IMG/VR virus record: IMGVR_UViG_3300042308_001616 | Coordinates: 124,001-188,000 of that record | Direction: 5' to 3' (one strand) | DNA length: 64,000 bases | In this document: positions 4,901 through 53,885 of the stretch, in pieces | How the letters are laid out: every line of letters starts with the position of its first letter | How positions within the stretch are numbered: position 1 is the first letter of the stretch | The notes under the pieces: model-generated | What the model was told of the DNA's origin: nothing | Database searches by the model: none | Seen by the model: only the letters and a program-made list of their open reading frames with translations | Program-made: the position numbers and the translations under genes

Positions 4901-5848
4901 GCAAAAGGAACTACATTGTTCAAAGCACTTACAAACAAAGAAGCGATTGATTTCAGATACTTGATTGACTCTTTCGGAAATGGTCTTACAGAGAATTCTA
5001 AACAACAACTTGCAGACATCTGTGGTGATAGACTTGACGCATTTGGATTCTTAAATATGCCATCAATGAGAGCATTCAAAAACTCTAGTTCTCCATCATT
5101 TGTGAACTCGGAAGGTGTTCTTCAAGCAGAATACATTGCAAAAGGAGCAGATCCTGAAAGTGGGCCAGCATTCTACTATACTTTCGCACAAGGAGAAGGA
5201 ACAACATGTGTTGGATACTTCTTACCATATCTTAGTGTGAATGATAACGGAAGACCTATGGATTTTCCACCTGCATCTTTCGTGGCTGCGACATATATGA
5301 GAAAACACATCAGTAACTTAGGTGGATTAACACCTTGGACAATCGCGGCGGGTGTAATAAACGGAAGAATTACAGGAATAAATGGTATAGAAATGGACTT
5401 CACACCAAGTGATATCGAATTTTTGAACCAAGCTCAGATGAACCCTATTGTTTTCAAAAGAAATAGAGGAAACGTTATCGAGACAGAGAACACAGCACAA
5501 ACTCTTTACAAATCTGCACTTTCTTACATACACGTTAGAGAGGTATTGATTGAACTTGAAAGAGAATTATCAAGAATGTTGTTAGACTTCCAATGGCAGT
5601 TCAACACTTCTGAAATCAGATCTGAAATTAAAATGAGGGCTGATATGATTTGTGAAACATTCGTAAGTAGAAACGGTCTATATAACTATTTCAACAAAAT
5701 GGACGAAGAGAACAACACCGCAGAGATTATCGATAATCAAATTGGTGTACTTGACACATACGTAGAACCAATAAAAGGTATGGGAATAATCGTGAATAAC
5801 GTAACCATATTAAGAACTGGTGCTATCGATTCAGGTGGATTCATATAA
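1904..5848 (+). CDS. Contractile tail sheath protein (T4 gp18-like) with large central insertion
   Basis: N-term 'RPGIFLEEYDNS...GVSKKGPINTP'; C-term sheath domain 'PPASFVA...PWTIAAG...LNQAQMNPI...SALSYIHVR...DEENNT.EIIDN...YVEP'. Confidence 0.93.
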   Translation: MAIQIGKYKRPGIFLEEYDNSVIATPIVEGITNLVIGVSKKGPINTPVRLTTVSDLESIFGQLDRGLERKGSYFHRTVSKMLESSPVFAMNLLLTDDTLDTIEYKSVSTSSDKANDMERLGAYRRFHDTTGFWKRDTESFLNLTKTNTGYSDRVLNFTNLSDRYATVFVFNSKVSGFDRTLIEWYGSIEKVPAYVNSTDWASDYMVDVVIIAGDWSDYRTLSVDPRWSAYFNANGLRKEQIRNFANDRNVSALAYYEGLSLIPYFRDANGRNIFIETTINRDTDKTGIFCAFNNDLVEADFYNGKIDIIGQTIVGNNKESIEFLSYQDTITEQVDFTTTPLDLPGNVTALIGPIQAVGDAFGSHAFEKSNNPRTSGVLQSYDRTAYYAEDFVRNVSLSASASRVDVNTVSVTYKVHTDGGYAVIGDNLVELAGPMAHTLSISSFNFATSSTALVYKSAFVLDSTGNFKVVTGDVPNTQPTVESSDIVLGHTSYTVQSQQFQTTVTQTNVYIDPENTGVTAYRHLILGTDYTVNLLPSQIPGSSQTRTGAIEITFLGTNKTPDLSDYVTYRRFKAFNRLVDLLDSPNREKMTMLIDITSMKKASMANMEVVDIVTSTTQNKSFTIVTGLNPSEITDVINGRLVFYTKDNELILGEESIVSKDTTVDTNWREGVVGKYSNLYSKFYDGQISTGDVIYNNRIKYVGTETSVATYSVYFVPGETLSAVSGFLTGPTTDYAGNDYIVLMGGAADPQFQLNDIIKVKGAVNNTGNFTIVSGKLNSTTFGAGSGFVYQVNENTTYEYVPVTSQINDMNSGSEHYLKMYLDGEKITINFVDAAGATSSLLNWDGSTSGAGVQASTNFTINSMDTNFKQSIEIEVPSGYTEVDNKILVNAQRYPEVMKGDFLEAEYDESTLEIGQVARKMTRILDKKQYSKDVSLMEITCDSKIKKVYSGSAYQTIRYKKVENYIETYKAISLKGFRVRQASLPDGTETKQNQILNLVAKGTTLFKALTNKEAIDFRYLIDSFGNGLTENSKQQLADICGDRLDAFGFLNMPSMRAFKNSSSPSFVNSEGVLQAEYIAKGADPESGPAFYYTFAQGEGTTCVGYFLPYLSVNDNGRPMDFPPASFVAATYMRKHISNLGGLTPWTIAAGVINGRITGINGIEMDFTPSDIEFLNQAQMNPIVFKRNRGNVIETENTAQTLYKSALSYIHVREVLIELERELSRMLLDFQWQFNTSEIRSEIKMRADMICETFVSRNGLYNYFNKMDEENNTAEIIDNQIGVLDTYVEPIKGMGIIVNNVTILRTGAIDSGGFI

Positions 5849-12709: not shown

Positions 12710-14086
12710 ATGATAAAACTTATTATATTTGATATGGATGGAGTTCTCGTAAATGCCAAAGAAATACACTACGAGACGTTGAATAACGCCATAGAGTTGA
12801 TTGTTGGTAAAAAATTCACAATAGATTTTTCAGAACACCTATCAACGTACGATGGTCTAAAAACTACACAGAAGTTAGATATGTTAAGTGAGAAGAAAGG
12901 ACTTAATAAATCAGAACATCAGAAAATATGGGACATAAAACAAAAACTAACACAAAAAAGTATTGGTGAAATTGGTCAGAATAACGAAATTATTTCATTA
13001 GTAAGTTGGCTCAAAGAAGAAGGATATATACTAGCGTGTTGTTCAAACTCAATAAGGAAAACAATATTTTTAGCATTATCTAGGATTGGTATTATAGAGT
13101 ATATGGACCTAATACTCTCCAATCAAGATGTACAGAGAGGGAAACCATATCCAGAAATTTACTGGAAAGCAATGAGTAATTTAGGATACTTACCAGAAGA
13201 AACACTAATAATTGAAGACTCACCTACAGGATTATTAGCAGCACATAGATCCGGTGCCAATATACTCAGAGTTGATAATCCATCACAAGTTCGAAAATCA
13301 AAAATCGATGAAGTAATATCAATGATAAATAAAACAAATAATATGAAAAACCCAAAGTGGAGAAATGATAAATTGAACGTACTCGTACCGATGGCCGGTG
13401 CAGGTACTCGTTTCGAAAAAGCAGGATATACATTTCCAAAACCTCTAATAGAAGTAAACGGAAAACCTATGATACAAGTTGTTGTAGAGAACTTAAACAT
13501 AGATGCAAACTACATATATGTCGTACAAAAAAGTCACAGAACTAAATACAATTTAGACACTCTTTTGAATCTAATAACTCCAAATTGTAGAATAGTGGAG
13601 GTAGAAGGAATAACAGAAGGTGCGGCATGTACTGCACTTCTCGCTAAAGAATTAATTGATAACGACGAACCACTTTTCTTTGCTAACTCAGATCAGTTCG
13701 CAGAATGGGACTCAAATGAGTTTATGTACAAAATGACAGAGACCAATTGTGATGGTGCAATTGTCACTTTCAAAGCTACACACCCAAAATGGTCATTTGC
13801 CAAATTAGATGATAATGGATTTGTTACAGAAGTTGCGGAAAAAAATCCTATCTCAGAAAACGCAACGGTCGGATTCTACTATTGGAAGAGAGGTTCGGAC
13901 TTTGTGAAGTATGCAGAGAGTATGATAGATAAAGATATACGTGTAAATAACGAGTTCTATGTTTGTCCTGTTTTCAATCAAGCGATTGATGACGGTCTAA
14001 AAGTCAGAACATTCGAAATTAGTAGAATGTGGGGACTCGGAACACCCGAAGATTTAAACCACTACCTAAATCATCATACAGAATGA
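12710..14086 (+). CDS. HAD-family phosphatase fused to sugar nucleotidyltransferase
   Basis: N-term DMDGVL, KPYPEIY, IEDS; C-term PMAGAGTRF, PKPLIEV, NSDQ, EKNPIS, GLGTPEDL. Confidence 0.9.
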   Translation: MIKLIIFDMDGVLVNAKEIHYETLNNAIELIVGKKFTIDFSEHLSTYDGLKTTQKLDMLSEKKGLNKSEHQKIWDIKQKLTQKSIGEIGQNNEIISLVSWLKEEGYILACCSNSIRKTIFLALSRIGIIEYMDLILSNQDVQRGKPYPEIYWKAMSNLGYLPEETLIIEDSPTGLLAAHRSGANILRVDNPSQVRKSKIDEVISMINKTNNMKNPKWRNDKLNVLVPMAGAGTRFEKAGYTFPKPLIEVNGKPMIQVVVENLNIDANYIYVVQKSHRTKYNLDTLLNLITPNCRIVEVEGITEGAACTALLAKELIDNDEPLFFANSDQFAEWDSNEFMYKMTETNCDGAIVTFKATHPKWSFAKLDDNGFVTEVAEKNPISENATVGFYYWKRGSDFVKYAESMIDKDIRVNNEFYVCPVFNQAIDDGLKVRTFEISRMWGLGTPEDLNHYLNHHTE

Positions 14087-14532
14087 TACTCATATCACAC
14101 CGCGGAAACACCAACGGAAGGCTCGATGATAAAGAGAACGAACCAACTTATATAGATTTTGCAATAAAAAAAGGATTCGACGTCGAGATTGACGTATGGT
14201 ACAAAGACAAAATGCTTTGGCTAGGACACGACGAACCACAATATGGTGTGGACTTCAGATGGTTCCGTGACAGACTAACGAAACTATGGGTACACTGCAA
14301 AAACACAGCAGCAGTGGTTTATTTCAAAGATTGTGGATACGACGTCAACTACTTCTGGCACCAGGAAGACGACCTAACACTAACATCCAAAGGTCACATC
14401 TGGGCTTACCCAGGTAAGCAACCAATAAAAGGATCAATCGCAGTGATGCCAGAGATACACGGTGACGACCTTTCAGAATGTCTGGGTATCTGTTCGGACA
14501 ACCCAGAACTTTACTCACAAACCGAAGAGTAA
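14083..14532 (+). CDS. Glycerophosphodiester-phosphodiesterase/PLC-like small protein
   Basis: 'ISHRGN...EIDVW...LGHD...WVHCKN...GICSD'; ATGA-coupled to the upstream gene (start revised from 14029). Confidence 0.75.
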   Translation: MILISHRGNTNGRLDDKENEPTYIDFAIKKGFDVEIDVWYKDKMLWLGHDEPQYGVDFRWFRDRLTKLWVHCKNTAAVVYFKDCGYDVNYFWHQEDDLTLTSKGHIWAYPGKQPIKGSIAVMPEIHGDDLSECLGICSDNPELYSQTEE

Positions 14533-14909
14533 TGAAAACATACGTAACACATACACACCATTTCACATACGAATGTTTGATGATATTCTATGTAAAGCCG
14601 TACTCTAAACTTGTCGACGTAAACATAGCAAACAACATGGTCTATGCTACGTTCGAATCACCAATAGAACCGATGGATTGTAACAAGAAATTCGAGATAA
14701 AACTCGTGAATACGTTCGCAGTAACACCATTTGAACTCTCCTTCTATGGTTCTGTAAAGAAGTCTGATATCAATATTATAGTCACATCTTCTGGTGCCTC
14801 TGCACAATTCTCACCCGAACTACTCGAGACTCTTTATATGGTCTACTACACCGAGTCGAAGCAACCGGAGGAGATACGTGACGAAAGGATTGATGAAGTT
14901 TTAATGTAA
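14532..14909 (+). CDS. Hypothetical protein with C-terminal RDERIDEVL motif
   Basis: TAATG coupling (start revised from 14478); C-terminal motif. Confidence 0.65.
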   Translation: MKTYVTHTHHFTYECLMIFYVKPYSKLVDVNIANNMVYATFESPIEPMDCNKKFEIKLVNTFAVTPFELSFYGSVKKSDINIIVTSSGASAQFSPELLETLYMVYYTESKQPEEIRDERIDEVLM

Positions 14910-14938
14910 AATGCCACTCTTAGAGTGGCATTTTTTTT
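14908..14938. terminator. Intrinsic terminator between convergent genes
   Basis: AAATGCCACTCT-t-AGAGTGGCATTTTTTTT. Confidence 0.8.
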
Positions 14939-15189
14939 AGTTTTATTTTTAAATCACCAGTTCCTTTTATAAGTCGGTGATAAACACCCATTGGTATGAA
15001 TACTTCTCCTTCTATTTTCATCGGAAGTTGATTATCTAATTGAATACCCCAATCAGTATCACCAATTGATTCAATTACACGAGATTCAAAATCTCGATGC
15101 CACATAAACTCACCGGAGTCAGTATCCTGACTAAACTCTCTGATAAACGTATTATCACTTATTTTAGTTTCTTGAAATGGAAGTGTCAT
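14920..15189 (-). CDS. Small cupin-like protein
   Basis: 'MWHRD.ESR...WGIQLDNQLP...IPMGVYHRLIKG'; ATGA-coupled start MTLPFQETK. Confidence 0.65.
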   Translation of the reverse strand: MTLPFQETKISDNTFIREFSQDTDSGEFMWHRDFESRVIESIGDTDWGIQLDNQLPMKIEGEVFIPMGVYHRLIKGTGDLKIKLKKMPL

Positions 15190-15190
15190 A
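15158..15190. repeat. 33-bp direct repeat, copy 1 (start of cupin gene)
   Basis: cttattttagtttcttgaaatggaagtgtcata; 1 mismatch to 15614-15646. Confidence 0.9.
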
Positions 15191-15605
15191 CACCAACCCA
15201 CGCTTTAATTTTATCCTGTAATTCACTAACAGCAACCGCTCTATGAGCACCGTCTATAATTCTATAATCCTCATCGACAACTATTGGTGGATAATCACCG
15301 GTTTCCTCTATAATACTTTTGTATTCCAGGACACTATCCTCGTTGATATAAAACTCATCCAAGTCTATTTGAGATATAGATAATTCAGTAAGTTTGTATA
15401 TTTCAAATTCTTCTATTCGGTCACTCAAATCACCATCTATAAAAGCACCTTCATAATCATCGTGTAAATATTGAACATAGTTGTAGATATATTCCTCTGA
15501 GATTTTATCACCAATCTTGGCATTGTACCAACATTTATTCAAATCAGCTCTACTCTTCAACTTCTCGTTTGCTTCAAATATTTTATATGTCTTCAAATGT
15601 CTCAT
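15186..15605 (-). CDS. ParB/Srx-like domain protein with capsid-targeting-like leader
   Basis: 'YPPIVVDEDYRIIDGAHRAVA'; starts MRHLKTYKIFEANE. Confidence 0.75.
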   Translation of the reverse strand: MRHLKTYKIFEANEKLKSRADLNKCWYNAKIGDKISEEYIYNYVQYLHDDYEGAFIDGDLSDRIEEFEIYKLTELSISQIDLDEFYINEDSVLEYKSIIEETGDYPPIVVDEDYRIIDGAHRAVAVSELQDKIKAWVGV

Positions 15606-15613
15606 ATAATTCT

Positions 15614-15646
15614 CTTATTTTAGTTTCTTGAAAAGGAAGTGTCATA
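15614..15646. repeat. 33-bp direct repeat, copy 2 (orphan copy of cupin gene start)
   Basis: cttattttagtttcttgaaaaggaagtgtcata; encodes a truncated MTLPFQETKI on the minus strand. Confidence 0.9.
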
Positions 15647-16445
15647 TTTTAAACTTCGTTTTATTTAACATATCTATTATATAATCTGAATATTGTTCAG
15701 CTGTAAACTTTTTACCATATTGAGATTTCATTTTCTGAAACTGATCATTTACTCTATTTGCAACCATTAGACCAAAGCTATTTTTATCTCTACCTTTTGC
15801 AGTATCTATTCCAAAATCATAAGCTCTTTTCTTAGTTTGTATACCAGTTTTCTTTAACCAATTATTATATACTTCTAATACTTTATTTTGGTCATTATCT
15901 TTATACCAATAAAACTTTAGATGGTCATTATCTTCGATAAAATGTTTAGCATCATATCCACATTTGAAAGAAATTGCTGAGTTTTTTAATTCACCTTCTG
16001 TACAAGATTTGTAGAAGTCACTTATAAGAGTTCCGAGGCCATTGAACCATCTTTTCAAGTTGTCTTCACTTTTTTCAAATGTTACATAAAAGTTTTTTGT
16101 TATTTCCTGATCACCTATTACTTCTTTTTGTTTAAGACTTGAGTTATAATTTACACCAAACCACTCATTTTGGTCATCCTGTCCAATTTTCATTACCCCA
16201 CTTTTATACTTAGCTAAGTATTCATCAAGTGTTTTTTTCCAACTAGTAGATACTTTTTGAATAAAATCATTAAGTTCTGTATGTTCTTCTTTTCCTCGAA
16301 TTATATTTTGATAAATCCAAGAAGAAAAATCCATATTCGCACCATCTAAGCTACTATTTATAAAATTGATTAGTTTTTTTCTTCTCTCATCACTTATTGT
16401 GAAAAATGAGTTTTCAAATATTTTATATGTTTTTAAATGTTTCAT
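15642..16445 (-). CDS. Hypothetical protein with leader MKHLKTYKIFEN
   Basis: Start revised from 16490; leader nearly identical at DNA level to that of 15186..15605. Confidence 0.7.
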   Translation of the reverse strand: MKHLKTYKIFENSFFTISDERRKKLINFINSSLDGANMDFSSWIYQNIIRGKEEHTELNDFIQKVSTSWKKTLDEYLAKYKSGVMKIGQDDQNEWFGVNYNSSLKQKEVIGDQEITKNFYVTFEKSEDNLKRWFNGLGTLISDFYKSCTEGELKNSAISFKCGYDAKHFIEDNDHLKFYWYKDNDQNKVLEVYNNWLKKTGIQTKKRAYDFGIDTAKGRDKNSFGLMVANRVNDQFQKMKSQYGKKFTAEQYSDYIIDMLNKTKFKI

Positions 16446-16456
16446 AAATCTTTTTT

Positions 16457-17029
16457 TTACCAAAAGCCGGGATAGGTACGGCCGTTCCACAAATGCGAGT
16501 AGCGGTTAATTCTGCATGCCCAGTACCCTGCTTTTGTTTTATCTTTTTTATCTTTACAATTATGACGCGCAGAAAATGCCTTTCTTGCCTTAGGATTAGA
16601 TACCTTAGCAGTTAATCCACCATGAACATCACCAAAAGCAATCTTTTTTACTTTACCGGTCTTAGGATTCTTAACATAAACGTGGTACTTCTTAGTTCCA
16701 CCTCTCATAGGATGGTTCAGTTTAACTTCTCTACCTTTGTATTCCGCCTCATTCATCTCTTCAACAGTCTCCATCGGAAGATCCAACGGAACTATCTCAC
16801 CATCAAATTCGACAAACTTACCTAAATCTGTACTCTCAAAAAGATATTTATCCAATCCACTAAATATAACTTCACCAGAATCAAATAATAATCTAGCCTC
16901 TTTTATGAGTTCAAGAAAGGAATCAGATCCAGGTCTAAAAACATTTTCAACAACAGATATATTATTATCAAGGTGATAATTCAATTTCTCAGAAACTAAA
17001 AAATTATTGAATTTCTTTATATAATTCAT
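16457..17029 (-). CDS. Conserved viral protein with basic C-terminal domain and leader MNYIKKFNNF
   Basis: 'KKYHVYVKNPKTGKVKKIAFGD...ARKAFSARHNC...AGYWAC' recalls basic domains shared by jumbo phages and giant viruses (family name uncertain). Confidence 0.65.
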   Translation of the reverse strand: MNYIKKFNNFLVSEKLNYHLDNNISVVENVFRPGSDSFLELIKEARLLFDSGEVIFSGLDKYLFESTDLGKFVEFDGEIVPLDLPMETVEEMNEAEYKGREVKLNHPMRGGTKKYHVYVKNPKTGKVKKIAFGDVHGGLTAKVSNPKARKAFSARHNCKDKKDKTKAGYWACRINRYSHLWNGRTYPGFW

Positions 17030-17037
17030 AATGTTTG

Positions 17038-17502
17038 TTATACATTTTTAATAAAGTCTATAAAAGGAACAACACCAGACACATCAGTTGTTTGAGTTGT
17101 TTCTTCACCACCATCAATATTTTCACATTCACAAGGATTACAATCACAACCAGAACAACACTCATCATCACTAGGGTTTATAGCACCCATAAAAATTTTA
17201 GAAGGATCTAAAACATCTTCTTCCGGTGCCACTTCATCAACAGATATAGAAATTGTAAAGTCTTCAAACTTTTTAATTGATTTCTTCAAACCAGGTGTTG
17301 TTACCTGTATTTCTTTTTTGAGTTTTTTTTCTGCAGCCTTTGGCATCTCCTCTAAATCAGAAACGAATGGTGCTTTACTAACAAAACCTTCTGTTTCATC
17401 AACTTCTTTATCTAATAAGGAATCTACATCAAACTCAATCTCAATATTTTTATCCTTAGCAATCTTAGCCTTAGCGGCCTCATGGAATCTATTTATGTGC
17501 AT
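17038..17502 (-). CDS. Acidic hypothetical protein with Cys cluster and internal IKKFEDF motif
   Basis: 'ECCSGCDCNPCECE'; WATATATA box upstream. Confidence 0.65.
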   Translation of the reverse strand: MHINRFHEAAKAKIAKDKNIEIEFDVDSLLDKEVDETEGFVSKAPFVSDLEEMPKAAEKKLKKEIQVTTPGLKKSIKKFEDFTISISVDEVAPEEDVLDPSKIFMGAINPSDDECCSGCDCNPCECENIDGGEETTQTTDVSGVVPFIDFIKNV

Positions 17503-17523
17503 AGTATTAAATTATTTGTAGTG

Positions 17524-17560
17524 TATATATTATTACCGAGATATGCCAATTTTATATATA
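17524..17560. promoter_or_regulatory. Back-to-back divergent WATATATA boxes
   Basis: Minus AATATATA 17524-17531; plus TATATATA 17553-17560. Confidence 0.55.
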
Positions 17561-17581
17561 AGCTAAACAAAAGGTCTTTAG

Positions 17582-20500
17582 ATGTCCAACCACAAAAACC
17601 TCATTTTCTTTAACAAAGAAGGTGATGCACTAAATTTCAACTACAACGAAACTAGCGATAGATTCGAGGGAGACATACTCTTCCACGAAAACTCAAGTGA
17701 TACGTATAAAACGTACGGAATATACACAATGGAAAAGATACCGTCTTTCGATTTCGAAATGACTGGTGAATTAACATTGGACAAATTTCAACTATTCAAC
17801 GAATGGGGACTGCACTTCTATGGTGGATCGACACAAAGTCAACCTATTGTAGGAATAGAACCGGTAAATAATGATCCAACATTCTACTCTAAATGGATTT
17901 ATGGAGTCAACTTCGAAGTTTTATTTCCAATTGGTTCAATCATAACTTTTAGTAAATCCATTTTTGAGTTTACAAATCAAAAAAGAACTTACAATGTTGT
18001 TGCTACCAAAAAAAATGCAATAATGATTATAAGTGAAATGGATAATGCAACATTTGAATCAAACTATAAATCAAATTACTCTTTCGCAGAAACATTTTAC
18101 TCAACAAACCCAACTAACGGAATAAACACATACATCTATAATATAAAAATTGTAAATGCGATAGGTGTTTATAATTATATAGATTCAAAATACCAAAATA
18201 ACTTATCTAACTGGAACGAACCAAACTTCTACGACAAATACTTCATAAATCAAAAATTGTGTGTAGTTAACACCGAAAATAACGACGGAACATACACCAT
18301 AAAAGAAACGGAGTTGACGGATCCTTTAGCATTTGAATACTACGTGACTTCTATACCAACGGGAGATGACCTTATAATAGAATATAAGAGCAAAACAGAC
18401 ACACCAATGGTTTTCGAGGGTAAAATACAAATATCATCAGACGGAAAACTAATACTCGATGAATTAGTTCCAGATGTCATAAAACCAGGTACTCAGATAA
18501 GAATCGCAGGTTCCAATCTAAACAATAATCCACTAATAGTCGCAAACGTACCGACATTCGAATCATTCTCGAACATAACTTACTTTGAAACTAACTCACA
18601 AGTTTTATATAATAATAGAATTTTTGAGTGTATAAAAGGATACACACATAGTTTCTCTACACTACCAACCAGAATAGTTACACCACTCTCAACCAATTAT
18701 TGGAGAAGAAGTCTAATATTAAAAGTAGAAGAAACAACTACAGCAGAAAACTTACTAAACGCACAGATTTATCTAACGACTGATACTCTTTACTTCACAC
18801 AACCATTTACTCAAAGTTCTGTGATGACATTGGCGATGGCCGCAGATAAATATTCAGAAGAAATGAAGTCACTGGGAGTAGACTTATACAGTGAAAGAGG
18901 TGTTCTAAGAGCAGACCTTATATATCCAAGTGAATATGCGATTGTAAACTTCTATCACAAAGATAAAACACAAAAGATTGGTTCAACACTAAGGACAAAC
19001 GAGAGACTTGTAGAGGTGTATGAGAATATTATTCCCGAACTAAATTACGACACAAATGAAAACCACCGATATAATATAGTTTTCACCGACTTAGATAGTT
19101 ATGGAATAAAGGTAGTGATAAACAAAGAAGTTTATGATGAAGAAGCATCGATAATATACACTGGTCCTAACATAGACATAGAGAGATCGATAGACAGGAC
19201 TTTAAGAAAATGGTTAGACAGGAATTACCTAAGGCTAAAACTATTAGGTGTTATTGCGGAATTAGAGTACATAGGTAATTTATCTTCTATATTCTTCAAT
19301 TCTATAATTCTAAAGAGTGAGTATCCTAACGTACCTATGTACATAAATCGTATAGAGGTAGGTAGTACAGCAGACTTCCACATAGAACACTCACGAGTTC
19401 TTTTCAATGGAACTCAATCAATAGGTCCGATGATTAACATAAATATAAACGGAAAGGACTATCAACAACAAACAATTTACGCAACATATTCAGCGACAGC
19501 GTCATACAAAGATCCAGACGTATCTGCAACTCTCGATAAATGGGTAGAGACACATGGTGCATTTCTGACGGATTTGGGATTAATACCAACAAACATAAAC
19601 AATCTTCTAAAGTTCGACATCAAAAAGACTGATATAGAATTCACATACACAATAGATTCTGGAAAATTACAATTACCCGGAAATAGTGAGATTGTTGTGA
19701 CCAAAAAACTAAAGGGTTCTTTCGGTTCCTTAGTCACATCAAATAGTGCAACACTCACAAAAGGACTAACCACATCATTTATGGATGCAGGATTTGCCAC
19801 AGGTATGGCGGTTTCGGTAAACAACACAATATATCCATTAATGAATAGGGAGTACAACCTAAACTATATTGATGATAATAAAATGTGTTTTAGTTACGAA
19901 GGTCCTTTTTGGGCACTAACCGATCCACTCTGTAATACATCGGCTTATGTTAGTGTTGCATTTAACTCAGGTTTTGGACAGACTGCTTGTGTACCGACAA
20001 CGGCATTAGGTGAAGGAAGTCCATTTGATTTGGATCAATTCAATAACTTATCATTCACAAAATACAAATTTGGTACCGCCTATAACACAGATTATATAGC
20101 ATTTTCATCAGTTCCTGGTTCTAATAATATGGTTGATATAAAATATATACAACTTTCTGAAATGATTTATGTCCTAGCGGACAACCTAATTGCCGTAGAT
20201 GCTTTTAATTTCGAATACGAGATATACATACCTCTAAACGGAAATAGTACCAGTATAAAAATGGAGTTCAACGAGTACAATAACTACATCTATTGTCTTT
20301 CAAAGAACGACATATACATTGTTGACCCACTACTAAATATACTAATGTCAACAATATCAATACCAACTTTAGATGCGGCAGACATTATTATCAATCCACT
20401 AAATGGTGATATCTACGTCAGTTTCACAAACTCACCAATCGTAAAAGTTTATGACTGGTCAAATACACCAAAAGCAACTATAACTATGCCATTTGTCTGT

Positions 20501-23377
20501 AACGCAACAGGTAAAATGGTTTTCAACTCATACGAAGAAGATATCTACGTGACAACAGATGGTGGTTCTGTAGTAAGGATAAATGGTAGTAACCTAAGTA
20601 TACAGGATAGTTATCCGGTTTCGGGTCTAACAACAAACGACATATTCTACGACCCTGTGAACGAGGCGGTATACGTATGGTCAAATTCAAATATGTTTAA
20701 GGTGGTCACAGGACAGGTAGTATCATTAACTACAATAACTGCGGGCTCTACAAACAAAACTATATTCAACAACCTTACAGGTGAGCTAAACGTATCAAAC
20801 ACAACAGGATTCAAATCGGTCGTACTGGACACAGACACATTATCTTTCAACGAATCGATTGGTGACTACGGACAAATAGTTCTAAATCAATATGATGGTA
20901 TGGTGTATATGGCATCATTGACAAATAATGCAGTAATTACAATCAATTCCGGTAATGGATGGGTGATACACTCTGAAGCAACAAATTCTCAGGCAACAAA
21001 GATAATATACAACCCTCTCAGGAAGTCTACCTGGTCTATGATACCGGGCTCTAAATCATTATTCGAAGTAAAACCAAGCATAAGTACATCAGTTTTACCA
21101 TCAACGACAAATAGTATAAAAATAACAGACGGACTATTCGGAACACTTTCTGACGAATATATTAAGAAGACAAATATATGGTTGAAGACTAGGGAATATT
21201 TAAGAAGACCGAGAGAGAATTTCAGTAATGATGTCAAAGTTAACTACTATTGGCAATGGATTGATGATCAAACACCGGAATTCTTCATATACGACTTCAC
21301 TGGATCACAATTAGAAAAAGGAACCAGTTATTCATATACCGGACCCGTTCCACTCGGAGATGTTCCTCTAAATACAAAACCAAATAGAGATTTAACGAAA
21401 ACCTCATCATCACAATATCAACAAACCGTATTCAACAAAGTTAGTTACGGATTAGAATATTTGGATAGTCTTACCGACACAAAACCAACATCATCAACAC
21501 TAGAGACGTTTATTGGGTTCAAATCAACGGACGAAGGACCAAAATCATCCACATTACAATTATACAAAGAGGAGTTGGTTGAGATTTTTATAACAAGCAC
21601 ATCTCAGAATCAGACAACTGTTTCTATGCACACCATAACAGAAAATGGTATAAAAACTGGTGTGATGAAAATAAATACAAACTCACAAGAAACTTTTACA
21701 GGAAAAGGATTGAAAACAGGCCAACATATAAGCCTAGATATTTTCGATATGAGTAACACAACTGCTCAGTTTACATCTTACAACCACGGAAAAAAGTTTA
21801 TAATACGTAATGTATATACGAAGACGTTGACACTCGATTTCTTAGAAGAGACAGATGAACTATTTGAGGAAAGTACCGTAGTAACTAACTATCCAATAGA
21901 AAACAACACAACATACCTAAGATTAAAAATAATCGTAATCGACAGAGAGATTGCCAGATTCACTTTATTTGCACAGACCGAGATAGAAGATATCAGATAT
22001 AAAATAAACCTCTCAAATGAAGGTAAAAATATAGGACCTAATGAAGTATTCATATTCAAAGACTATGATATATTAGAAGGTGGAATAGACTGGAAGTTCC
22101 TCAATATGAAGAGGAAAGAAATGTTACTAAACAAGCACCAAATATACACTTATATAGGTGCATACAAATCTATCATAAACGCAATAAACTATTTCGGTTT
22201 CAACGATTTGAAACTAAACGAATACTACAAAAACGTTATAAGTGGATCTAAAGAATATGGAAGACTTTTCAAAGTAGAAATACCCGACATATTCGATAAC
22301 TCAACACCAGGTTGGACAGAAAACGATTTCATAAAACACACTTTTCCGAATGAAAACTACGAGTCCACAAACTTACTGAACCTAACATATGATATAACGG
22401 ACAGAGAAGGTAGTAGTGTATTGAACTATAGTATAGAAGAGGTAACTATAAAACTTCAGGGTCTCAAAACGTGGTTATCTAAAAACATAGTACCACTAAC
22501 ACATAAAATACAAGACATAACAGGAAAGTCAAACTTTGCAACAGCAAATGAGATTGACCACCAAATGTACGACATCAAAACATTCAAAATACGTGAAGAG
22601 ATGACACCTATATCATTCAAACTAAATGAGGCGTATCTACTTCCAATAAACAGTGGCTCTACCGTATACAATTGTGTTATCGATTTCTACTCTATGTTAG
22701 ATGGTGCTGGTGAAGATAGACCATTATACAGAGGAAATGAGATAAGACCATATCCAGATAGTAACATAGTACTACCAGACTACTATACGATAAAAGTTAG
22801 AACTTATAGAACATATAAGGAATGGATGCCATTCGAAACATATTCGAAAGGTGATAGAGTCATATACTACGGAAAACTTTACGAGTCCTACATAAATGTA
22901 AATAAAATGAGAAATCCAAGGTCTAACGATGATGTACAATTATGGGAAAGTGGAAGAGAATATGTAGTTACCGATATTGTGAAATATAACGAAAGAACAT
23001 ATGCTAAACAAGAAGTTTCAACATCATTAACAACATCACCACTATTCAACAATGGTGATGGTAAAGATTGGTTGGACATAACAGACTGGTTTGAAATAGA
23101 CTATACTCCAGTACAGACAATAAGTGAATATAGAAATACAAACCCTGCATATCCAACAGGAGTTTCACACTCTACACCATGGCCACTTCTACCATTCAAT
23201 TTCACAATTGACTCAAACTTAGATCCTTTTGTGGTGATTGAAGTTAGTAGTGATAATGGGTATGGAAGTACTTACACAGATAGGAAAAGTTATGAAATAA
23301 GAGGTATAAAAGATTTAATGCAGAAACAAATACCGATAGAAAGAATAGGTCCATTTCAACCAATAAATCTTCTTTAA
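17582..23377 (+). CDS. Large virion protein, probable baseplate wedge with beta-propeller region
   Basis: 1931 aa; repeated 'FN.YNNYIY/INPLNGDIYV/YDPVNEAVYV' blades; 'IGAYKSIINAINYFG' wedge-type motif; late box upstream. Confidence 0.6.
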   Translation: MSNHKNLIFFNKEGDALNFNYNETSDRFEGDILFHENSSDTYKTYGIYTMEKIPSFDFEMTGELTLDKFQLFNEWGLHFYGGSTQSQPIVGIEPVNNDPTFYSKWIYGVNFEVLFPIGSIITFSKSIFEFTNQKRTYNVVATKKNAIMIISEMDNATFESNYKSNYSFAETFYSTNPTNGINTYIYNIKIVNAIGVYNYIDSKYQNNLSNWNEPNFYDKYFINQKLCVVNTENNDGTYTIKETELTDPLAFEYYVTSIPTGDDLIIEYKSKTDTPMVFEGKIQISSDGKLILDELVPDVIKPGTQIRIAGSNLNNNPLIVANVPTFESFSNITYFETNSQVLYNNRIFECIKGYTHSFSTLPTRIVTPLSTNYWRRSLILKVEETTTAENLLNAQIYLTTDTLYFTQPFTQSSVMTLAMAADKYSEEMKSLGVDLYSERGVLRADLIYPSEYAIVNFYHKDKTQKIGSTLRTNERLVEVYENIIPELNYDTNENHRYNIVFTDLDSYGIKVVINKEVYDEEASIIYTGPNIDIERSIDRTLRKWLDRNYLRLKLLGVIAELEYIGNLSSIFFNSIILKSEYPNVPMYINRIEVGSTADFHIEHSRVLFNGTQSIGPMINININGKDYQQQTIYATYSATASYKDPDVSATLDKWVETHGAFLTDLGLIPTNINNLLKFDIKKTDIEFTYTIDSGKLQLPGNSEIVVTKKLKGSFGSLVTSNSATLTKGLTTSFMDAGFATGMAVSVNNTIYPLMNREYNLNYIDDNKMCFSYEGPFWALTDPLCNTSAYVSVAFNSGFGQTACVPTTALGEGSPFDLDQFNNLSFTKYKFGTAYNTDYIAFSSVPGSNNMVDIKYIQLSEMIYVLADNLIAVDAFNFEYEIYIPLNGNSTSIKMEFNEYNNYIYCLSKNDIYIVDPLLNILMSTISIPTLDAADIIINPLNGDIYVSFTNSPIVKVYDWSNTPKATITMPFVCNATGKMVFNSYEEDIYVTTDGGSVVRINGSNLSIQDSYPVSGLTTNDIFYDPVNEAVYVWSNSNMFKVVTGQVVSLTTITAGSTNKTIFNNLTGELNVSNTTGFKSVVLDTDTLSFNESIGDYGQIVLNQYDGMVYMASLTNNAVITINSGNGWVIHSEATNSQATKIIYNPLRKSTWSMIPGSKSLFEVKPSISTSVLPSTTNSIKITDGLFGTLSDEYIKKTNIWLKTREYLRRPRENFSNDVKVNYYWQWIDDQTPEFFIYDFTGSQLEKGTSYSYTGPVPLGDVPLNTKPNRDLTKTSSSQYQQTVFNKVSYGLEYLDSLTDTKPTSSTLETFIGFKSTDEGPKSSTLQLYKEELVEIFITSTSQNQTTVSMHTITENGIKTGVMKINTNSQETFTGKGLKTGQHISLDIFDMSNTTAQFTSYNHGKKFIIRNVYTKTLTLDFLEETDELFEESTVVTNYPIENNTTYLRLKIIVIDREIARFTLFAQTEIEDIRYKINLSNEGKNIGPNEVFIFKDYDILEGGIDWKFLNMKRKEMLLNKHQIYTYIGAYKSIINAINYFGFNDLKLNEYYKNVISGSKEYGRLFKVEIPDIFDNSTPGWTENDFIKHTFPNENYESTNLLNLTYDITDREGSSVLNYSIEEVTIKLQGLKTWLSKNIVPLTHKIQDITGKSNFATANEIDHQMYDIKTFKIREEMTPISFKLNEAYLLPINSGSTVYNCVIDFYSMLDGAGEDRPLYRGNEIRPYPDSNIVLPDYYTIKVRTYRTYKEWMPFETYSKGDRVIYYGKLYESYINVNKMRNPRSNDDVQLWESGREYVVTDIVKYNERTYAKQEVSTSLTTSPLFNNGDGKDWLDITDWFEIDYTPVQTISEYRNTNPAYPTGVSHSTPWPLLPFNFTIDSNLDPFVVIEVSSDNGYGSTYTDRKSYEIRGIKDLMQKQIPIERIGPFQPINLL

Positions 23378-35351: not shown

Positions 35352-35968
35352 AAAATATAATAAATGAATGTGAACGGCTCGCCCAGGAGACTGGCGAGCC
35401 TCACTTCGTTCTGGACTGGAAAACTTTACACGAGATAAAGAAGAAAACTGCCGAAAATAAAGAGGATAAAAGAGAAGCTGATCTCGAAGAGATCCTCGAC
35501 GAGCAGGAATATGAAATAGGTGACTGGACAACCGTTCAACAGATGCCATCTATGGAAATATTCTACGATAGTGTTTCGAAGCTCACCGAGCAAAAGGACA
35601 GAATGCTTTGGGCCATACGAAGACTCGAGAGGCTAGGTTTCAAAAAAAACTCAATATTTGACCTAATCGACGAGGAAGACAGAGACGTATTACAAACGAA
35701 CTTCAATATGGAGTTCTCGATGAAGATTGAACTCGAATACGGAGACTTCATAAGCGCCACAATATCACCGAACCTACTTACCAAAATCAAACATTTCTCC
35801 ACCATCGATAGCTCCAAAACAACAATCGGTCACGAGATGATATTCAGGGAGATATACCACGGATACCTGATAACGGAAGACATCATCGAGGCAATCACCA
35901 ACAAAGTGAAAGCCGAGTCGATGAAACCAATCGTAAGGGATATCAAAATAAACGAGCTGTTAGACTAA
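35333..35968 (+). CDS. Hypothetical protein with C-terminal RDIKINELL motif
   Basis: 211-aa ORF; motif at end. Confidence 0.7.
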   Translation: MDTKYLENIINECERLAQETGEPHFVLDWKTLHEIKKKTAENKEDKREADLEEILDEQEYEIGDWTTVQQMPSMEIFYDSVSKLTEQKDRMLWAIRRLERLGFKKNSIFDLIDEEDRDVLQTNFNMEFSMKIELEYGDFISATISPNLLTKIKHFSTIDSSKTTIGHEMIFREIYHGYLITEDIIEAITNKVKAESMKPIVRDIKINELLD

Positions 35969-36643
35969 GTAGTTCCTAAGTGCAGATCCAACATCGGGCG
36001 ACTTATTCTCCTTATTCATATACTCGAAGAAACAACGATGTGACAAAATGTCCTGTACCTCGTTGACACCAAACCTGCTGATACTTTCGAAAACTTGGCA
36101 ATCGTGATGAGTTATGTAAATCTGGTCATCGAAAGACCAGGGTGTTCCATATGCAGAGTCGTAAACTGTCCTCGACCTCAAACTTTGCCTTAACGGACTC
36201 AGATCCGACACCGGTAAATAGTCAAAACTTATGACAAGATTATCGCGTACTGCCTTTTTAACATAATCAAACTTCCATTTAACATCATAAAGAGAATAGA
36301 ATAACCAACTAAAGGGATGTTCTCGGAAAACACGAGCTATCTTATCACCATATTTATCAATCGGTATGAGATTCACCTTTCCCCTTTCACATATGACAAG
36401 TCTATGACCGACATCTTGACCATTCTCATAGAGCTTACCGCAGTCGAACGCATCTAGATCTAGGTAGGAAAGCCTCTCCTTCAGCTCGACTAACCGGTCG
36501 CCGTCCATATCCTCGCACTGCCAAACCTGAATGTCTTGCCAAGTCCGTACCAGCACAGGCGACTCCGAAACCGAAAGGATCAAATCCTTTATCTCCGAGT
36601 CACGTTCCGACCCGAAATACTCAAACATCTTAATATACCTCAT
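35960..36643 (-). CDS. Hypothetical protein with leader MRYIKMFEYF
   Basis: AATATATA 4 nt upstream of ATG; weak similarity to 56054 and 56761 genes. Confidence 0.7.
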   Translation of the reverse strand: MRYIKMFEYFGSERDSEIKDLILSVSESPVLVRTWQDIQVWQCEDMDGDRLVELKERLSYLDLDAFDCGKLYENGQDVGHRLVICERGKVNLIPIDKYGDKIARVFREHPFSWLFYSLYDVKWKFDYVKKAVRDNLVISFDYLPVSDLSPLRQSLRSRTVYDSAYGTPWSFDDQIYITHHDCQVFESISRFGVNEVQDILSHRCFFEYMNKENKSPDVGSALRNYLV

Positions 36644-39326: not shown

Positions 39327-39941
39327 ATGAAGCATATTAAAAAATACGAAAGCTTTTCTGTTAATGAGGAATTACAATTGTTTAATTTTGCTGCAGCTTT
39401 GAAAAAATTAGTTTCTATGTCAGCGGATGAAATCAAAGCAAAGTTTCCTGGTATAGATAAAGCTGTTGAAAAACCTGAGGTTAATGCAGTTTTAAGTAAT
39501 CAAGATATAGATGCCGCAGATTTCAGTGATCCAAATGCAAGTGGACAATTAAGTAGTGTTGCAGGTGATTTAGAAAAACAAAGTGAATCTAAAATCAATG
39601 AAAATATTTTCATTGATAAGTTAAAAAGTATTTGGAATAAAGTAAAAGCACCTGCAGCATTAGTTTCTGCTGCGGCTGCATTAGCTCCAATCTTTATGGG
39701 TATGAAGGATTTTGTCACTAACGTTCCAGCTGATACTTTCAAATTTCTTGGTTTCAACGATTATGATGCGGGTGGTCAAAGTTTTACTGGATTAGGTTTT
39801 GCTGCAATGGTTTATGCAGTTGCTGCATTAGCATTTTTTGTCAAAAAAGGTTTAGTAGATAAACAAGTTGCTGCTGAAACTACTGCTCCTAAAAAACCAG
39901 TCAATGTGGTTAAGAGAGACAAATATGGTAGACCAATCTAA
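39327..39941 (+). CDS. Leader-bearing (MKHIKKYESFSVNE) protein with two hydrophobic helices
   Basis: Leader; second 'KINE' site; Ala-rich TM-like segments. Confidence 0.7.
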   Translation: MKHIKKYESFSVNEELQLFNFAAALKKLVSMSADEIKAKFPGIDKAVEKPEVNAVLSNQDIDAADFSDPNASGQLSSVAGDLEKQSESKINENIFIDKLKSIWNKVKAPAALVSAAAALAPIFMGMKDFVTNVPADTFKFLGFNDYDAGGQSFTGLGFAAMVYAVAALAFFVKKGLVDKQVAAETTAPKKPVNVVKRDKYGRPI

Positions 39942-49276: not shown

Positions 49277-49873
49277 TTACTTTTTTTTCTTTTTCCTTTC
49301 TTTGGCAGCCTTTGCCTTTGTCCATAATTCAGAGTCTGCTTTCCTTGCACCACCTGAACCAGTAATGAAACTATTCACTCTACCAAATGCCCATTGATGT
49401 TGTGCAACACCAGGTCTGTGTCCAGCGTTCCACGCTTGCATTCCTTTAGAGAAAACTTTTCTAAGAATACCTACCGGTATTCCAGATGCTTCAGATTTCT
49501 TTTTTAATGATTTGGCAACACCTGATTTTTTTTTTTCATCGATACTCTCTAACCAGTAGAGCTCATCGTTGAAAGATTCGAAGCAAAGTATCCTACTCTC
49601 CTCGAGAGAGTCATCTATCTCTTCATCATTCCTTTTATCAACACCTTTGTTGTGTTCAACATCGTCTGCCATAGCTTTGTAAAGTTTCGTAATCTCTTCT
49701 TTATTCATTGGTTTTCCGTCTTCATCACCATCGATGAAACCATCAGGGAAACCACCAACAATCTCTATCTCATCCTCAAGTTCTTCAACACTTTTACCTT
49801 TGGTCTTACCGAAGTCGTCAATATTTTTCCATCGGTTTATTTCCGAATCTTTAAATTCTCTGAGGTATCTCAT
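49277..49873 (-). CDS. Leader-bearing protein with DUF5824-like C-terminal domain
   Basis: 'SGIPVGILRKVFSKGMQAWNAGHRPGVAQHQWAFGRVNSF'; starts MRYLREFKDSE; internal ILCFESFNDE. Confidence 0.7.
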   Translation of the reverse strand: MRYLREFKDSEINRWKNIDDFGKTKGKSVEELEDEIEIVGGFPDGFIDGDEDGKPMNKEEITKLYKAMADDVEHNKGVDKRNDEEIDDSLEESRILCFESFNDELYWLESIDEKKKSGVAKSLKKKSEASGIPVGILRKVFSKGMQAWNAGHRPGVAQHQWAFGRVNSFITGSGGARKADSELWTKAKAAKERKKKKK

Positions 49874-49882
49874 ATCCTTTAT

Positions 49883-50452
49883 TTATTTTTCTTTATCACC
49901 AAACATCTTTTGGTATGCTTTGGTTGCAGCAGACTTTTTCGTCTTCACCCTTTTACCTTCACCACCTTTTCCAGATGTATAATCAGCATCCCAATCTTTT
50001 TTATATGTCTTTTTGCCTCTAAAAGTGTCAATCTCTTTTTTCATCTTACCTGGGTTTTTAGTAAGGTATTTTCCAGGTATTTTATGACCTTTATAGCGTT
50101 GAGATTTTGACTTCTCTTCTACACCTTCTGGCATTATAACTTTTAGGTCAGATTCTATAAGCTCCATAGCATCCTCTAATGAGTCTACATTTTTTTTGAA
50201 GTCTACTCTTCCACCGAAAGTTTTTTCAACAAATAAATCATCTACATCGAGATCATATTTTACGGCAACATCTTGCCAAACAAAATCGAGAACTACATGA
50301 TGATCGTCAGTACTACTCCATTTGTATACAAACTCACCCACAACAGATTTAGAGACTAAGTCCCTTATTCTCTCCATACGTTCCTCGACGTAATCTGAGC
50401 CCACGAAGCCACCGCCCTGAACGAACTCGTAGAATTTCTTTATTTTTGACAT
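49883..50452 (-). CDS. Leader-bearing protein (MSKIKKFYEF) with basic C-terminal domain
   Basis: 'KIPGKYL...KTKKSAATKAYQKMFG'; late box 4 nt upstream. Confidence 0.7.
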   Translation of the reverse strand: MSKIKKFYEFVQGGGFVGSDYVEERMERIRDLVSKSVVGEFVYKWSSTDDHHVVLDFVWQDVAVKYDLDVDDLFVEKTFGGRVDFKKNVDSLEDAMELIESDLKVIMPEGVEEKSKSQRYKGHKIPGKYLTKNPGKMKKEIDTFRGKKTYKKDWDADYTSGKGGEGKRVKTKKSAATKAYQKMFGDKEK

Positions 50453-53045: not shown

Positions 53046-53076
53046 AAAAGCACAGATTATTCTGTGCTTTTCTATT
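53041..53076. terminator. Bidirectional intrinsic terminator
   Basis: AATAGAAAAGCACAGA-ttat-TCTGTGCTTTTCTATT. Confidence 0.85.
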
Positions 53077-53885
53077 TATGCTTTATGAACAAAGTTCGTT
53101 TTTGGAACCAGATAGTGACCCTCCATAGTAATAACTCCTTTGCCTCTGAAAATGTAGCTAGGTTTTAAATTATCAACAGACATAACCACAAAATAATCAG
53201 TCTTCATTTCTGTGTAGTCACCGGAAATAACTACTTTGTAATACTCAACACCATCTAATATTGTTTCACTAACATTATCCAGTGTCTTAACCTGTATTGT
53301 GAAATCTTTTCCGTTATGATTGAACATTAGGTCTATACTTTCTAATGCATCTTCCTGTTTAGTGGTAGGCCTACGAATCTGTACGTTTATACCCTTCGAC
53401 TTTGCATATTCTGTAAAGAACACCTCTGCATCTGACTCCTTCTGCTGACCTAAATCACTCTTACCTGACACCGTTGCATACAGACTCCAGAAGAACTTAT
53501 TCGTAGGTTTGAATAAATCCGTGTTTCTCTCTAAGTAATCGAGTAAATCCTGTGCGTTATCTACGACGTGTCCATCCGCAAGTGCTTTGTAGACTATCCT
53601 ATGTAGTACCGTTATGTTGTTCGGCATCATCGCTACATACTCCGTATAGATTTGACCCTGTGGTGTACTCACCGTACGTATGTCGTAAAATCTTTTACCA
53701 GGTGTATATTGATGGAACACCGGCTGTGACATCAACGAAGCTTTTATTGTTTTCCTTATTTCTCCCAACATATCACCATCTACATAGATACTGGCAATAA
53801 CACTACCATTCTTATCTTTTATAAGTAAAGTTATCGGTTTTTTTGGCTTTTCTACATATTGTGAAAATTCTCTAATGTATATCAT
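53076..53885 (-). CDS. Putative PD-(D/E)XK nuclease-like protein with leader MIYIREFSQYVE
   Basis: 'G..KESDAE...QEDALESIDLMF...TIQVKT'. Confidence 0.55.
   Translation of the reverse strand: MIYIREFSQYVEKPKKPITLLIKDKNGSVIASIYVDGDMLGEIRKTIKASLMSQPVFHQYTPGKRFYDIRTVSTPQGQIYTEYVAMMPNNITVLHRIVYKALADGHVVDNAQDLLDYLERNTDLFKPTNKFFWSLYATVSGKSDLGQQKESDAEVFFTEYAKSKGINVQIRRPTTKQEDALESIDLMFNHNGKDFTIQVKTLDNVSETILDGVEYYKVVISGDYTEMKTDYFVVMSVDNLKPSYIFRGKGVITMEGHYLVPKTNFVHKA

Follow-up and report, generated by a model that had tools for sequence, protein, structure and literature searches.

Leader-tagged gene cassettes, probably exchanged through short coding homologies, in an uncultured freshwater T4-like phage

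Why should the opening of one phage gene stand twice in the same operon, once intact and once as an orphan stub, and why should the stub lie between two genes that begin almost alike and continue with unrelated bodies? The question is raised by positions 14908-17502, minus strand, of the window (the whole stretch of DNA analysed, 64,000 nt, i.e., bases 124001-188000 of IMG/VR virus record IMGVR_UViG_3300042308_001616, a sequence of 248,751 bp with 35.7% G+C). This region is one operon, which reads g154, g190, variable cassettes, a cupin-like gene and a terminator; here the cassettes are a gene for cargo B and a gene for a ParB-like cargo, each opening with an 11-residue leader, and the stub between them copies the start of the cupin-like gene (Table 1). 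A first-pass annotation had interpreted the arrangement as alternative cargo alleles of one slot, stacked by recombination at these short homologies. The answer reached here is that the locus is a translationally coupled array of leader-tagged, probably capsid-delivered effector genes of an uncultured freshwater T4-like phage. Exchange of its cassettes appears highly probable from the comparison of relatives; the composite statement, which joins cassette exchange to a capsid-targeting leader and injected enzymes, is put forward as reasonably likely.

Two short repeats define the problem. The first 32 nt of the cupin gene recur, with one mismatch, at 15614-15645, where they open the stub; this element has two matches in the window, two in the entire 248,751-bp genome and none in 100 shuffles. 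The first-pass annotation had described the repeat as 33 nt and 11 codons long (15158-15190 and 15614-15646), coordinates that are correct to one base; those ranges hold only if the T before each ATG is counted and, as the eleventh codons differ (AGT vs AGA), the shared length is 10 2/3 codons. The coupling that it described is present in both places, the ATG overlapping the TGA stop of the preceding gene as ATGA. The second repeat is the leader itself, MRHLKTYKIFE in the ParB-like protein and MKHLKTYKIFE in B, which was rightly called near-identical: the two copies agree at 30 of 33 nt (91% over 34 nt), with no such match expected by chance, and the exact slot-type leader occurs twice in the genome and no more. 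The bodies behind the leaders are indeed unrelated, their models having a HopA1/phospho-lyase-like fold and a ParB/sulfiredoxin fold.

The stub has a CCT codon like the B-linked cupin alleles of relatives, and the intact cupin gene has CCA like the ParB-linked alleles. As an open reading frame (ORF), the stub overlaps the first 23 nt of the ParB-like gene and is read there in a different frame. The joint between stub and ParB start, AGAATTAT, differs from the junction of ParB with gene C, a cargo found in relatives, and forms with the preceding AAG the run AAGAGA, which lies 7-12 nt before the ParB ATG and may serve as a Shine-Dalgarno element. Separately, the duplicated cupin start (15161-15189 and 15617-15645, minus strand) resembles a sigma-70 promoter with a score of 10/12 (ATGACA, 17 nt, TAAAAT); no site in the region belongs to a higher score class, yet the total of hits is at shuffle level, and the transcript would start a few bases before the ParB ATG.

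If the slot exchanges genes, relatives should differ in what it holds, and they do. IMG/VR contains 285 loci with a cupin homolog, of which 80 were examined; g190 is also present in 67, and the space between g190 and the cupin gene takes 21 architectures among these 67 loci, with zero to three genes each. The slot is empty in 19, with 6-33 bp between the anchors in 17 and a short non-coding remnant in the other two. It holds the 130-aa gene C alone in 15 loci, B alone in five and ParB alone in one; the remaining forms are numerous and hold one, two or three genes. The cultured Flavobacterium phage immuto likewise has an empty slot, with g190 adjoining the cupin gene. Relatives with a single cargo, with other cargos or with nothing, for which the first-pass annotation had called, thus exist, and gene content is far from the invariance that would have spoken against its reading. 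A metagenome scan with the ParB protein added four loci; an exact-pattern scan of IMG/VR for the stub followed by the leader found none, the pattern being too strict (the L110-type stub has AAAG for CAAG) and records close to that of the window lying outside the search.

When cargos are clustered after removal of their first 14 residues, they fall into 15 unrelated families, and the same 11-residue leader opens at least 11 of them. They are stacked head-to-tail with overlapping or nearly overlapping stop and start codons, inter-cassette gaps being 0-36 nt, and in two loci (L107 and L108) cargos also lie downstream of the cupin gene. Two further slot families are homing endonucleases with GIY-YIG catalytic (PF01541) and I-TevI DNA-binding domains; they occur in about 12 of the 67 slots (about a fifth), usually as the first gene, and not in the slot of the window. 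On these gene orders, the site is a hyperplastic cassette array and not a two-allele slot. An 87-nt g190-ParB spacer in L006 (3915-4000; the contig is shared with L038) is a remnant of the gene C 3' end and represents a second type of deletion scar.

A further short element accompanies the cassettes. The motif ATATATAG, followed after 3-4 nt by ATG, lies directly 5' of many cassettes in relatives (e.g., L031:4600-4612, L034:4181-4193 and L066:4561-4573) and is found in the window at 49453-49463 on the minus strand. It occurs 25 times in this genome, seven times before genes. Some occurrences coincide with the end of a homing endonuclease gene (…F-Y-I-stop); the motif may act as a promoter or in initiation.

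How the slot of this genome was filled can be approached through its flanks, of which g190 is a mosaic. The 5' ~300 nt of g190 are 93-100% identical to L004, a locus with the order g190, C, ParB, cupin; by sliding identity, the 3' half is 68-78% identical to L004 vs 80-87% to B-type loci (g190, B, cupin), and the switch falls at about alignment column 300. A second block of similarity to L004, at 93.7% identity, begins at the terminator, takes in cupin and ParB and stops 28 nt upstream of the ParB start, and the high-scoring segment pair between the window and the B-type loci covers 15611-16995, ending at the stub end. These blocks suggest that a backbone of the order g190, C, ParB, cupin took a patch of ~1.1 kb from a donor of the order g190, B, cupin. 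Besides B, the patch would contain the 3' half of g190 and, from the donor cupin gene, its first 33 nt; it would have replaced the g190 3' half and gene C of the backbone. The left crossover would be an ordinary homologous exchange inside g190; on the right, the donor cupin start would have been joined 8 nt before the ParB ATG, which would leave the 32-nt stub and stack B on ParB. The 8-nt joint may have arisen by microhomology or by later deletion.

The ParB cassette has a wider record. An identical 139-aa ParB protein (P0020) stands behind three different upstream genes: gene C, with an ATGA overlap (L112, L114 and others); B with the stub (L113, and the window at 99%); and a 194-aa cargo with a stub (L110 and L111). 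Between L110/L111 and the contigs with B and stub, the 3' part of the stub and the 8-nt joint are letter-identical and the 5' part differs; the 5' part in L110 is identical to the junction in L076 of the 194-aa cargo with an intact, GTG-initiated cupin gene. Two cargo-stub junctions on one stub-ParB joint imply that the upstream cargos were exchanged by a crossover inside the ~30-nt stub. The stub would thus have been re-used as a right-hand homology, a cargo with its own linked cupin start having been fused to the stub-ParB joint in L110/L111. The stacking history proposed in the first-pass annotation has to be amended on this point, as the joint, present in L110/L111 after a different cargo, is older than its association with B.

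Six contigs have ParB genes at 98-99.8% nucleotide identity next to cupin genes at 75-99%. In every pair compared, divergence on the cupin side sets in at the cupin start codon, with few differences over the first ~55 nt and many after; on the other side of the ParB block, it begins at the ParB ATG or within the stub. By this pattern, the ParB cassette has recently spread between diverged backbones by exchange in short conserved flanks. The leader is conserved at the DNA level as well: there are 31 distinct leader sequences of 33 nt, with a mean identity of 87% between unrelated cargo families. For recombination of the T4 type, a homology of less than 50 bp is reportedly enough (PMC2839356, citing Singer et al. 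1982).

By comparison of the relatives, cassettes are very probably gained, lost and exchanged between co-infecting phages via short conserved patches, i.e., the 33-nt leader, the 3' part of g190 and the first ~33-55 nt of the cupin gene, and the GIY-YIG/I-TevI-like homing endonucleases could supply double-strand breaks. Gain, loss and swapping of tagged genes, the mechanism suggested at the outset, agrees with breakpoints that coincide with short homologies and with a slot that ranges from empty to three genes. Stacking of cargo alleles by recombination holds in the same respect, the breakpoints falling at the homologies that had been named; what does not hold is the simplicity of one slot with alternative alleles, given a multi-cassette array of at least 15 families (11 of them tagged).

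Several observations weigh against exchange through short patches. For the leader as a crossover site, the evidence consists of block boundaries at the ParB ATG, and no exchange maps inside a leader. In this genome the first-pass annotation placed the crossovers correctly at the stub end and incorrectly at the leader, the left crossover being in g190 near 16730. The 8-nt joint region has only a weak match, about 22/32, to the 3' end of gene C. Finally, a form with the ~456-bp deletion that had been proposed as a check was not seen: no contig had the exact joint among the Logan contigs of four metagenome runs aligned on 14600-17200, which are contigs and not raw reads and in which rare variants drop out.

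In a rival account, the stub is the neutral scar of one illegitimate insertion and the variability of the site reflects homing endonucleases and general hyperplasticity, with no special role for short homologies. The stub-ParB joint has no clear homology on the ParB side, the gene C remnant in L006/L038 is another scar of illegitimate deletion, and a good part of the slots hold homing endonuclease genes, as counted above. A single neutral event does not readily explain two different upstream cargos on the same stub with the switch point inside it, nor a ParB block that ends at the ParB ATG or stub and at the conserved cupin 5' end in every pair compared, and the short homology requirement of T4-type recombination removes the need for longer patches. 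We consider the neutral scar unlikely and retain exchange in short conserved flanks.

What, then, does the leader do? Its consensus is M-K-H/Y-L-K-T-Y-K/Q-I/L-F-E followed by S/N/A. Among 37 distinct leader N-termini from 11 families, 32 have [ILVM]-x-E at positions 9-11; L4, Y7, F10 and E11 are near-invariant, and E11 is invariant in two family alignments, including that of the ParB-like family. The DNA varies synonymously at H3, L4 and S12 and the amino acids are kept. In the AlphaFold2 (AF2) models of both B and the ParB-like protein, the leader lies outside the fold with a predicted local distance difference test score (pLDDT) below 50.

The genome encodes a head module of the T4 type, with a Gp23 capsid protein (PF07068, E 4.2e-27), a portal protein (phrog_213) and a maturation protease (phrog_207, 1.3e-30; the PF03420 match is just 2.7e-5, below Pfam's cut-off). 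The protease forms the N-terminal ~270 residues of a 699-aa protein, the remainder of which is scaffold-like. The gene contains a 42-bp tandem repeat in 9.9 copies (L109:5226-5641; about 98225-98640 of the genome, outside the window) that encodes ~10-11 tandem 14-aa units with Y-S-E-Y-I-A-E-N, and [LI]xE[SAGN] reaches a density of 2.8 per 100 aa in the 699-aa protein vs 0.32 in the proteome, the 99th percentile. Every unit of the repeat thus offers a candidate site for the protease, and its sequence is similar to the capsid-targeting sequence of T4. The head module also holds mobile nucleases: a 716-aa HNH-type homing endonuclease directly 3' of the major capsid gene (L109:353-2503, minus strand) and a 644-aa nuclease between protease and portal (L109:7039-8973, plus strand); both lie outside the window.

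In T4, gp21 cuts after L/I-X-E and so dismantles the scaffold, and the capsid-targeting sequence is the first 10 residues of IPIII, of which residues 4 and 7 are needed for targeting and 8 and 10 for processing (PMC9026906). The internal proteins of T-even phages are diverse and the targeting sequence alone is conserved (PMC3012670). T4 IPII and IPIII begin MKTYQEFIAE and IPI begins MKTFKEF; one slot cargo begins MKSYKEFVLE. Phage immuto has two other shared N-termini, MKKSQL…I-K-E and ME-N-x-FD…L-x-E, which end in I/L-x-E near residue 12 and are common to genes beside its g190-cupin pair and to small proteins inside its portal-protease-capsid module (L123:17727-19787; L124:3356-3577 and 5242-5469; gene 200 contains F-I-A-E-A).

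By this analogy, the leader would be a capsid-targeting propeptide of the T4 type, an assignment that we favour by a small degree. Through it, each cargo would enter the scaffolding core of the prohead, the prohead protease would cut the leader off after E11, and the mature enzyme would enter the host with the DNA, probably to act against host defences. The nature of the tag, which the first-pass annotation had left open, may thus be that of a T4-like propeptide. The reservations are these. Leader and T4 sequence have K-T-Y-x-x-F and I-x-E in common with a one-residue shift, a likeness too short for statistics. A looser N-terminal motif, M-K/R-Y/H-I/L-K-x-F/Y-E-x-F, opens 17 of the 252 predicted genes (vs 0.33% of internal Met), which is many for internal proteins, and most of these lack E at position 11. 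Genes with the looser motif lie in the window at 35960-36643(-), 39327-39941(+), 49883-50452(-), 53076-53885(-), 54498-55034(+) and 56054-56761(-), with more elsewhere.

The scatter of the looser N-terminus over the genome, together with the dominance of A-rich codons in the leader, would also suit a shared N-terminal module with another role, be it a membrane or secretion signal, a degron, an oligomerisation helix or an RNA-level translation-initiation region; shuffling would still be real. An RNA-level role is hard to reconcile with amino acids conserved through synonymous codon changes, and a signal peptide with the lack of a hydrophobic stretch of the required length. The hydrophobic residues at 4, 7 and 10, with the invariant E11 ahead of a small residue, suit a protease site, and the scaffold contains that site some 10-11 times over; the leaders of immuto differ in sequence and yet end in I/L-x-E and are common to small head-module proteins. 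Another role for the leader is, in our judgement, doubtful, and capsid targeting is kept as the working assignment.

Cargos whose function can be guessed are enzymes. The AF2 model of B has a pLDDT of 87 and a predicted TM-score of 0.81, with residues 1-12 below 50. In Foldseek it matches 4rsw_A (HopA1) at E 3.7e-6, probability 1.0 and TM 0.47-0.49, and it is also near LxmY and class III lanthipeptide lyase domains, with a weaker likeness to the OspF/SpvC phosphothreonine lyases; Atlas HopA1 clusters score 0.85/0.83. Because TM is 0.47-0.49 and no Pfam match at E 0.1 or better was obtained when membership of PF17914 was tested, B is called HopA1/phospho-lyase-like and not a member. The ParB-like cargo matches phrog_620 (E 1.5e-5), with PF02195 in its homologs; its AF2 model finds 5k5d, 7bnr and 6ky4 in Foldseek at E about 1e-4, and DGAHR (the D-G-x-H-R box) is invariant in the family alignment. 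It is accordingly predicted to have a ParB N-terminal/sulfiredoxin (Srx) nucleotide-binding fold. A ParB partition protein was considered and rejected: ~75 C-terminal residues of the 139 match ParB, the N-domain alone is aligned, and the helix-turn-helix and dimerisation domains of such a protein are missing. Other slot cargos include a GNAT acetyltransferase (PF00583, 4e-12) and an HExxH protein; these two, the ParB/Srx-domain protein and the HopA1/phospho-lyase-like protein are among the candidates for injected enzymes.

The tag is not tied to its cargo. The distant homologs P0013 of the B family and P0036 and P0035 of the ParB family have the same body with another N-terminus, with either no leader or a 40-residue extension before a leader-like I-V-E. 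The same bodies with other N-termini in distant homologs indicate that the tag itself is exchangeable.

The stub could also have a use of its own. It might be kept as a short coupled upstream ORF that opens the ParB start region, with AAGAGA as the ribosome-binding site, an idea compatible with cassette exchange; ribosomes that terminate on B would begin anew at the ATGA and translate the 20 codons through the start of ParB. The ATGA coupling, the position of AAGAGA and a joint that is letter-identical in four contigs from different samples are in its favour; however, the stub of L110/L111 starts with GTG after TAG, termination-reinitiation is ill served by an ORF that ends 23 nt beyond the ParB start, and in C-type loci ParB is directly ATGA-coupled with no stub at all. 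Such a function seems improbable, more so than the alternatives weighed above.

The stacked layout recurs in other assemblies. Between 63% and 100% of the words sampled from the stretch are present in each of 20 public metagenome runs from lakes and rivers. Among the aligned Logan contigs, X2 record 10 spans 15049-16436 gapless with 9 differences and X5 record 26 spans 14920-16638 gapless with 42; these two, from two other studies, run across cupin, ParB, stub and B, and the B-stub-ParB junction recurs unchanged in L113, a contig of 12.7 kb from another run. The layout has been assembled independently in at least three studies, and the 9-42 scattered differences mark the spanning contigs as independent genomes. 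Many metagenome contigs match the window over the 34-nt leader alone, their similarity to it ending at 16413 on one side and at 16445/6 on the other. In run X1, the probable source sample, record 2 (depth 9 vs 17) matches the cupin 5' part (15091-15183) with 8 differences, beyond which its upstream sequence is a different one, so more than one slot variant co-occurs in that lake sample. The duplication does not look like the assembly artefact that the first-pass annotation had named as a danger: although both parental types co-occur in lake metagenomes and the Logan contigs of run X4, from a third study, end precisely within the stub, the expected behaviour of a k-mer graph at a repeat, a chimera of a B-cupin strain and a ParB-cupin strain joined via the shared 33-mer is extremely improbable, as it would yield B-cupin and not a stub, a novel 8-nt joint and ParB, and the same joint stands in gapless contigs from other studies and assemblers (X2, X5, L113).

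Table 1. Operon features, in order of transcription, with positions in the window.
Feature	Position	Strand	Basis
g154, first gene of the operon, 154 aa	17038..17502	-	ORF list; 29-57% aa identity to same-position homologs in relatives
g190, left anchor of the slot, 190 aa, begins MNYIKKFNNF	16457..17029	-	phrog_7595 E 1e-12
Putative imported patch: g190 3' half, cargo B and cupin stub	15611..16730	-	left end approximate
Cargo B, 267 aa	15642..16445	-	ORF list and AF2 model
Leader of cargo B, MKHLKTYKIFE	16413..16445	-	leader repeat
Orphan stub ORF, 20 codons	15583..15645	-	first 32 nt copy the cupin start
8-nt joint AGAATTAT, stub to ParB start	15606..15613	-	identical in window, L113, L110, L111
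ParB/sulfiredoxin-domain cargo, 139 aa	15186..15605	-	phrog_620, structure matches, block boundaries
Leader of the ParB-like gene, MRHLKTYKIFE	15573..15605	-	leader repeat
Cupin-like gene, 89 aa, no leader, right anchor of the slot	14920..15189	-	285 IMG/VR homologous loci
Conserved 5' end of the intact cupin-like gene; stub template, right-hand crossover zone	15158..15189	-	
Bidirectional terminator ending the operon: perfect 13-bp hairpin, T/A runs on both sides	14908..14934	.	

The fixed parts of the operon are less informative about function. Pfam and PHROG searches gave no family for g154; g190 has no Pfam match, and PHROGs gave families of unknown function alone. The cupin-like gene has no match in Pfam; an Atlas cluster nearly identical to it has a model that matches Cupin_2 families at TM 0.73-0.80. 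An Rfam search of 13500-18500 found no RNA family. Synteny with all relatives breaks at the terminator, and no relative matches the DNA below 14908. Beyond it (14029-14909, plus strand) the window has two plus-strand genes of 143 and 167 aa, and at 12710-14086 a HAD-nucleotidyltransferase fusion, where the relatives compared (L110-L115) instead have a convergent metallophosphatase gene. At the other end, g154 is divergently oriented to a 1931-aa ORF (17582-23377, plus strand), and L110 has a gene of equal length beside the operon. The neighbours of the operon in immuto are tail spike and fibre genes.

As a record of single-gene swapping the locus is unusually clean, with one near-identical cassette in three contexts and crossovers resolved to a few tens of bases, and a single locus allows dozens of natural variants to be compared; it indicates that very short coding homologies (30-50 nt) suffice for cassette exchange. 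Beyond this, and more tentatively, the leader might mark a large exchangeable arsenal of capsid-packaged, host-injected enzymes in an abundant freshwater lineage, the packaging signal doubling as a recombination linker. Such an arsenal would include phospho-lyase-like, ParB/Srx-domain, GNAT and metalloprotease-like proteins. Proteins injected with phage DNA act before any phage gene is expressed, which makes them prime counter-defence candidates, and the tag could then serve to mine metagenomes for injected anti-defence effectors. To our knowledge, few injected phage proteins are known outside T4.

Known systems share parts of this picture. Modular shuffling mediated by PeSLs, accompanied by mini-circles, has been described in hyperplastic regions of T4-type phages (Arbiol et al. 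2010, PMC2839356; PMC4122927). There as here, short conserved flanks of non-essential ORFs are portable crossover sites that allow insertion, deletion and replacement between near-identical phages, and a gene bracketed by direct repeats, as in the 456-bp unit here, is predicted to give rise to a mini-circle. PeSLs, however, combine an intergenic promoter with a stem-loop terminator, whereas the homologies here are coding (the leader and the 5' end of the next gene). PeSL cassettes as such were rejected: no promoter/terminator units lie between the genes, the sole terminator-like hairpin follows the cupin gene, and promoter-like hits number 17 vs 15.6 in shuffled sequence. Cassettes of the integron type were rejected as well, since the cassette borders have no attC-like inverted repeats and Pfam and PHROG searches found no integrase in the operon.

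The free-standing GIY-YIG endonucleases of T4 (Seg, I-TevI) have the same domains as the slot endonucleases and are similarly inserted between conserved genes in some relatives only; segB of T4 is annotated a few kb from ipI. The slot of the window lacks such a gene, and a role in the exchanges here is conjectural. The ejection proteins of phiKZ, 201phi2-1 and SPN3US, phages of similar genome size, offer a further parallel, since many head-internal proteins of these phages are processed by a gp21-related protease that cleaves behind the Glu of a short motif, but their propeptides are long and varied, and the papers cited describe neither a short tag common to them nor a cassette slot (PMC9026906, PMC5694885).

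The closest known system is that of the polymorphic internal-protein loci of T-even phages. These loci were reportedly described by Repoila et al. in 1994 (cited in PMC3012670), and the capsid-targeting sequence of T-even phages is said to have been treated by Mullaney and Black in 1996 (reviewed in PMC9026906). The present locus differs in a leader of different sequence that is one residue longer, in cassettes that are translationally coupled in one operon, and in its setting, a distant, uncultured, 249-kb freshwater relative with a protease fused to a repeat scaffold. The two are alike in a head module of the T4 type, in unrelated small proteins that share a propeptide (putative here) of ~10 residues ending in I/L-x-E, in a locus that is highly variable between close relatives, and in cargos that look like host-directed enzymes or inhibitors.

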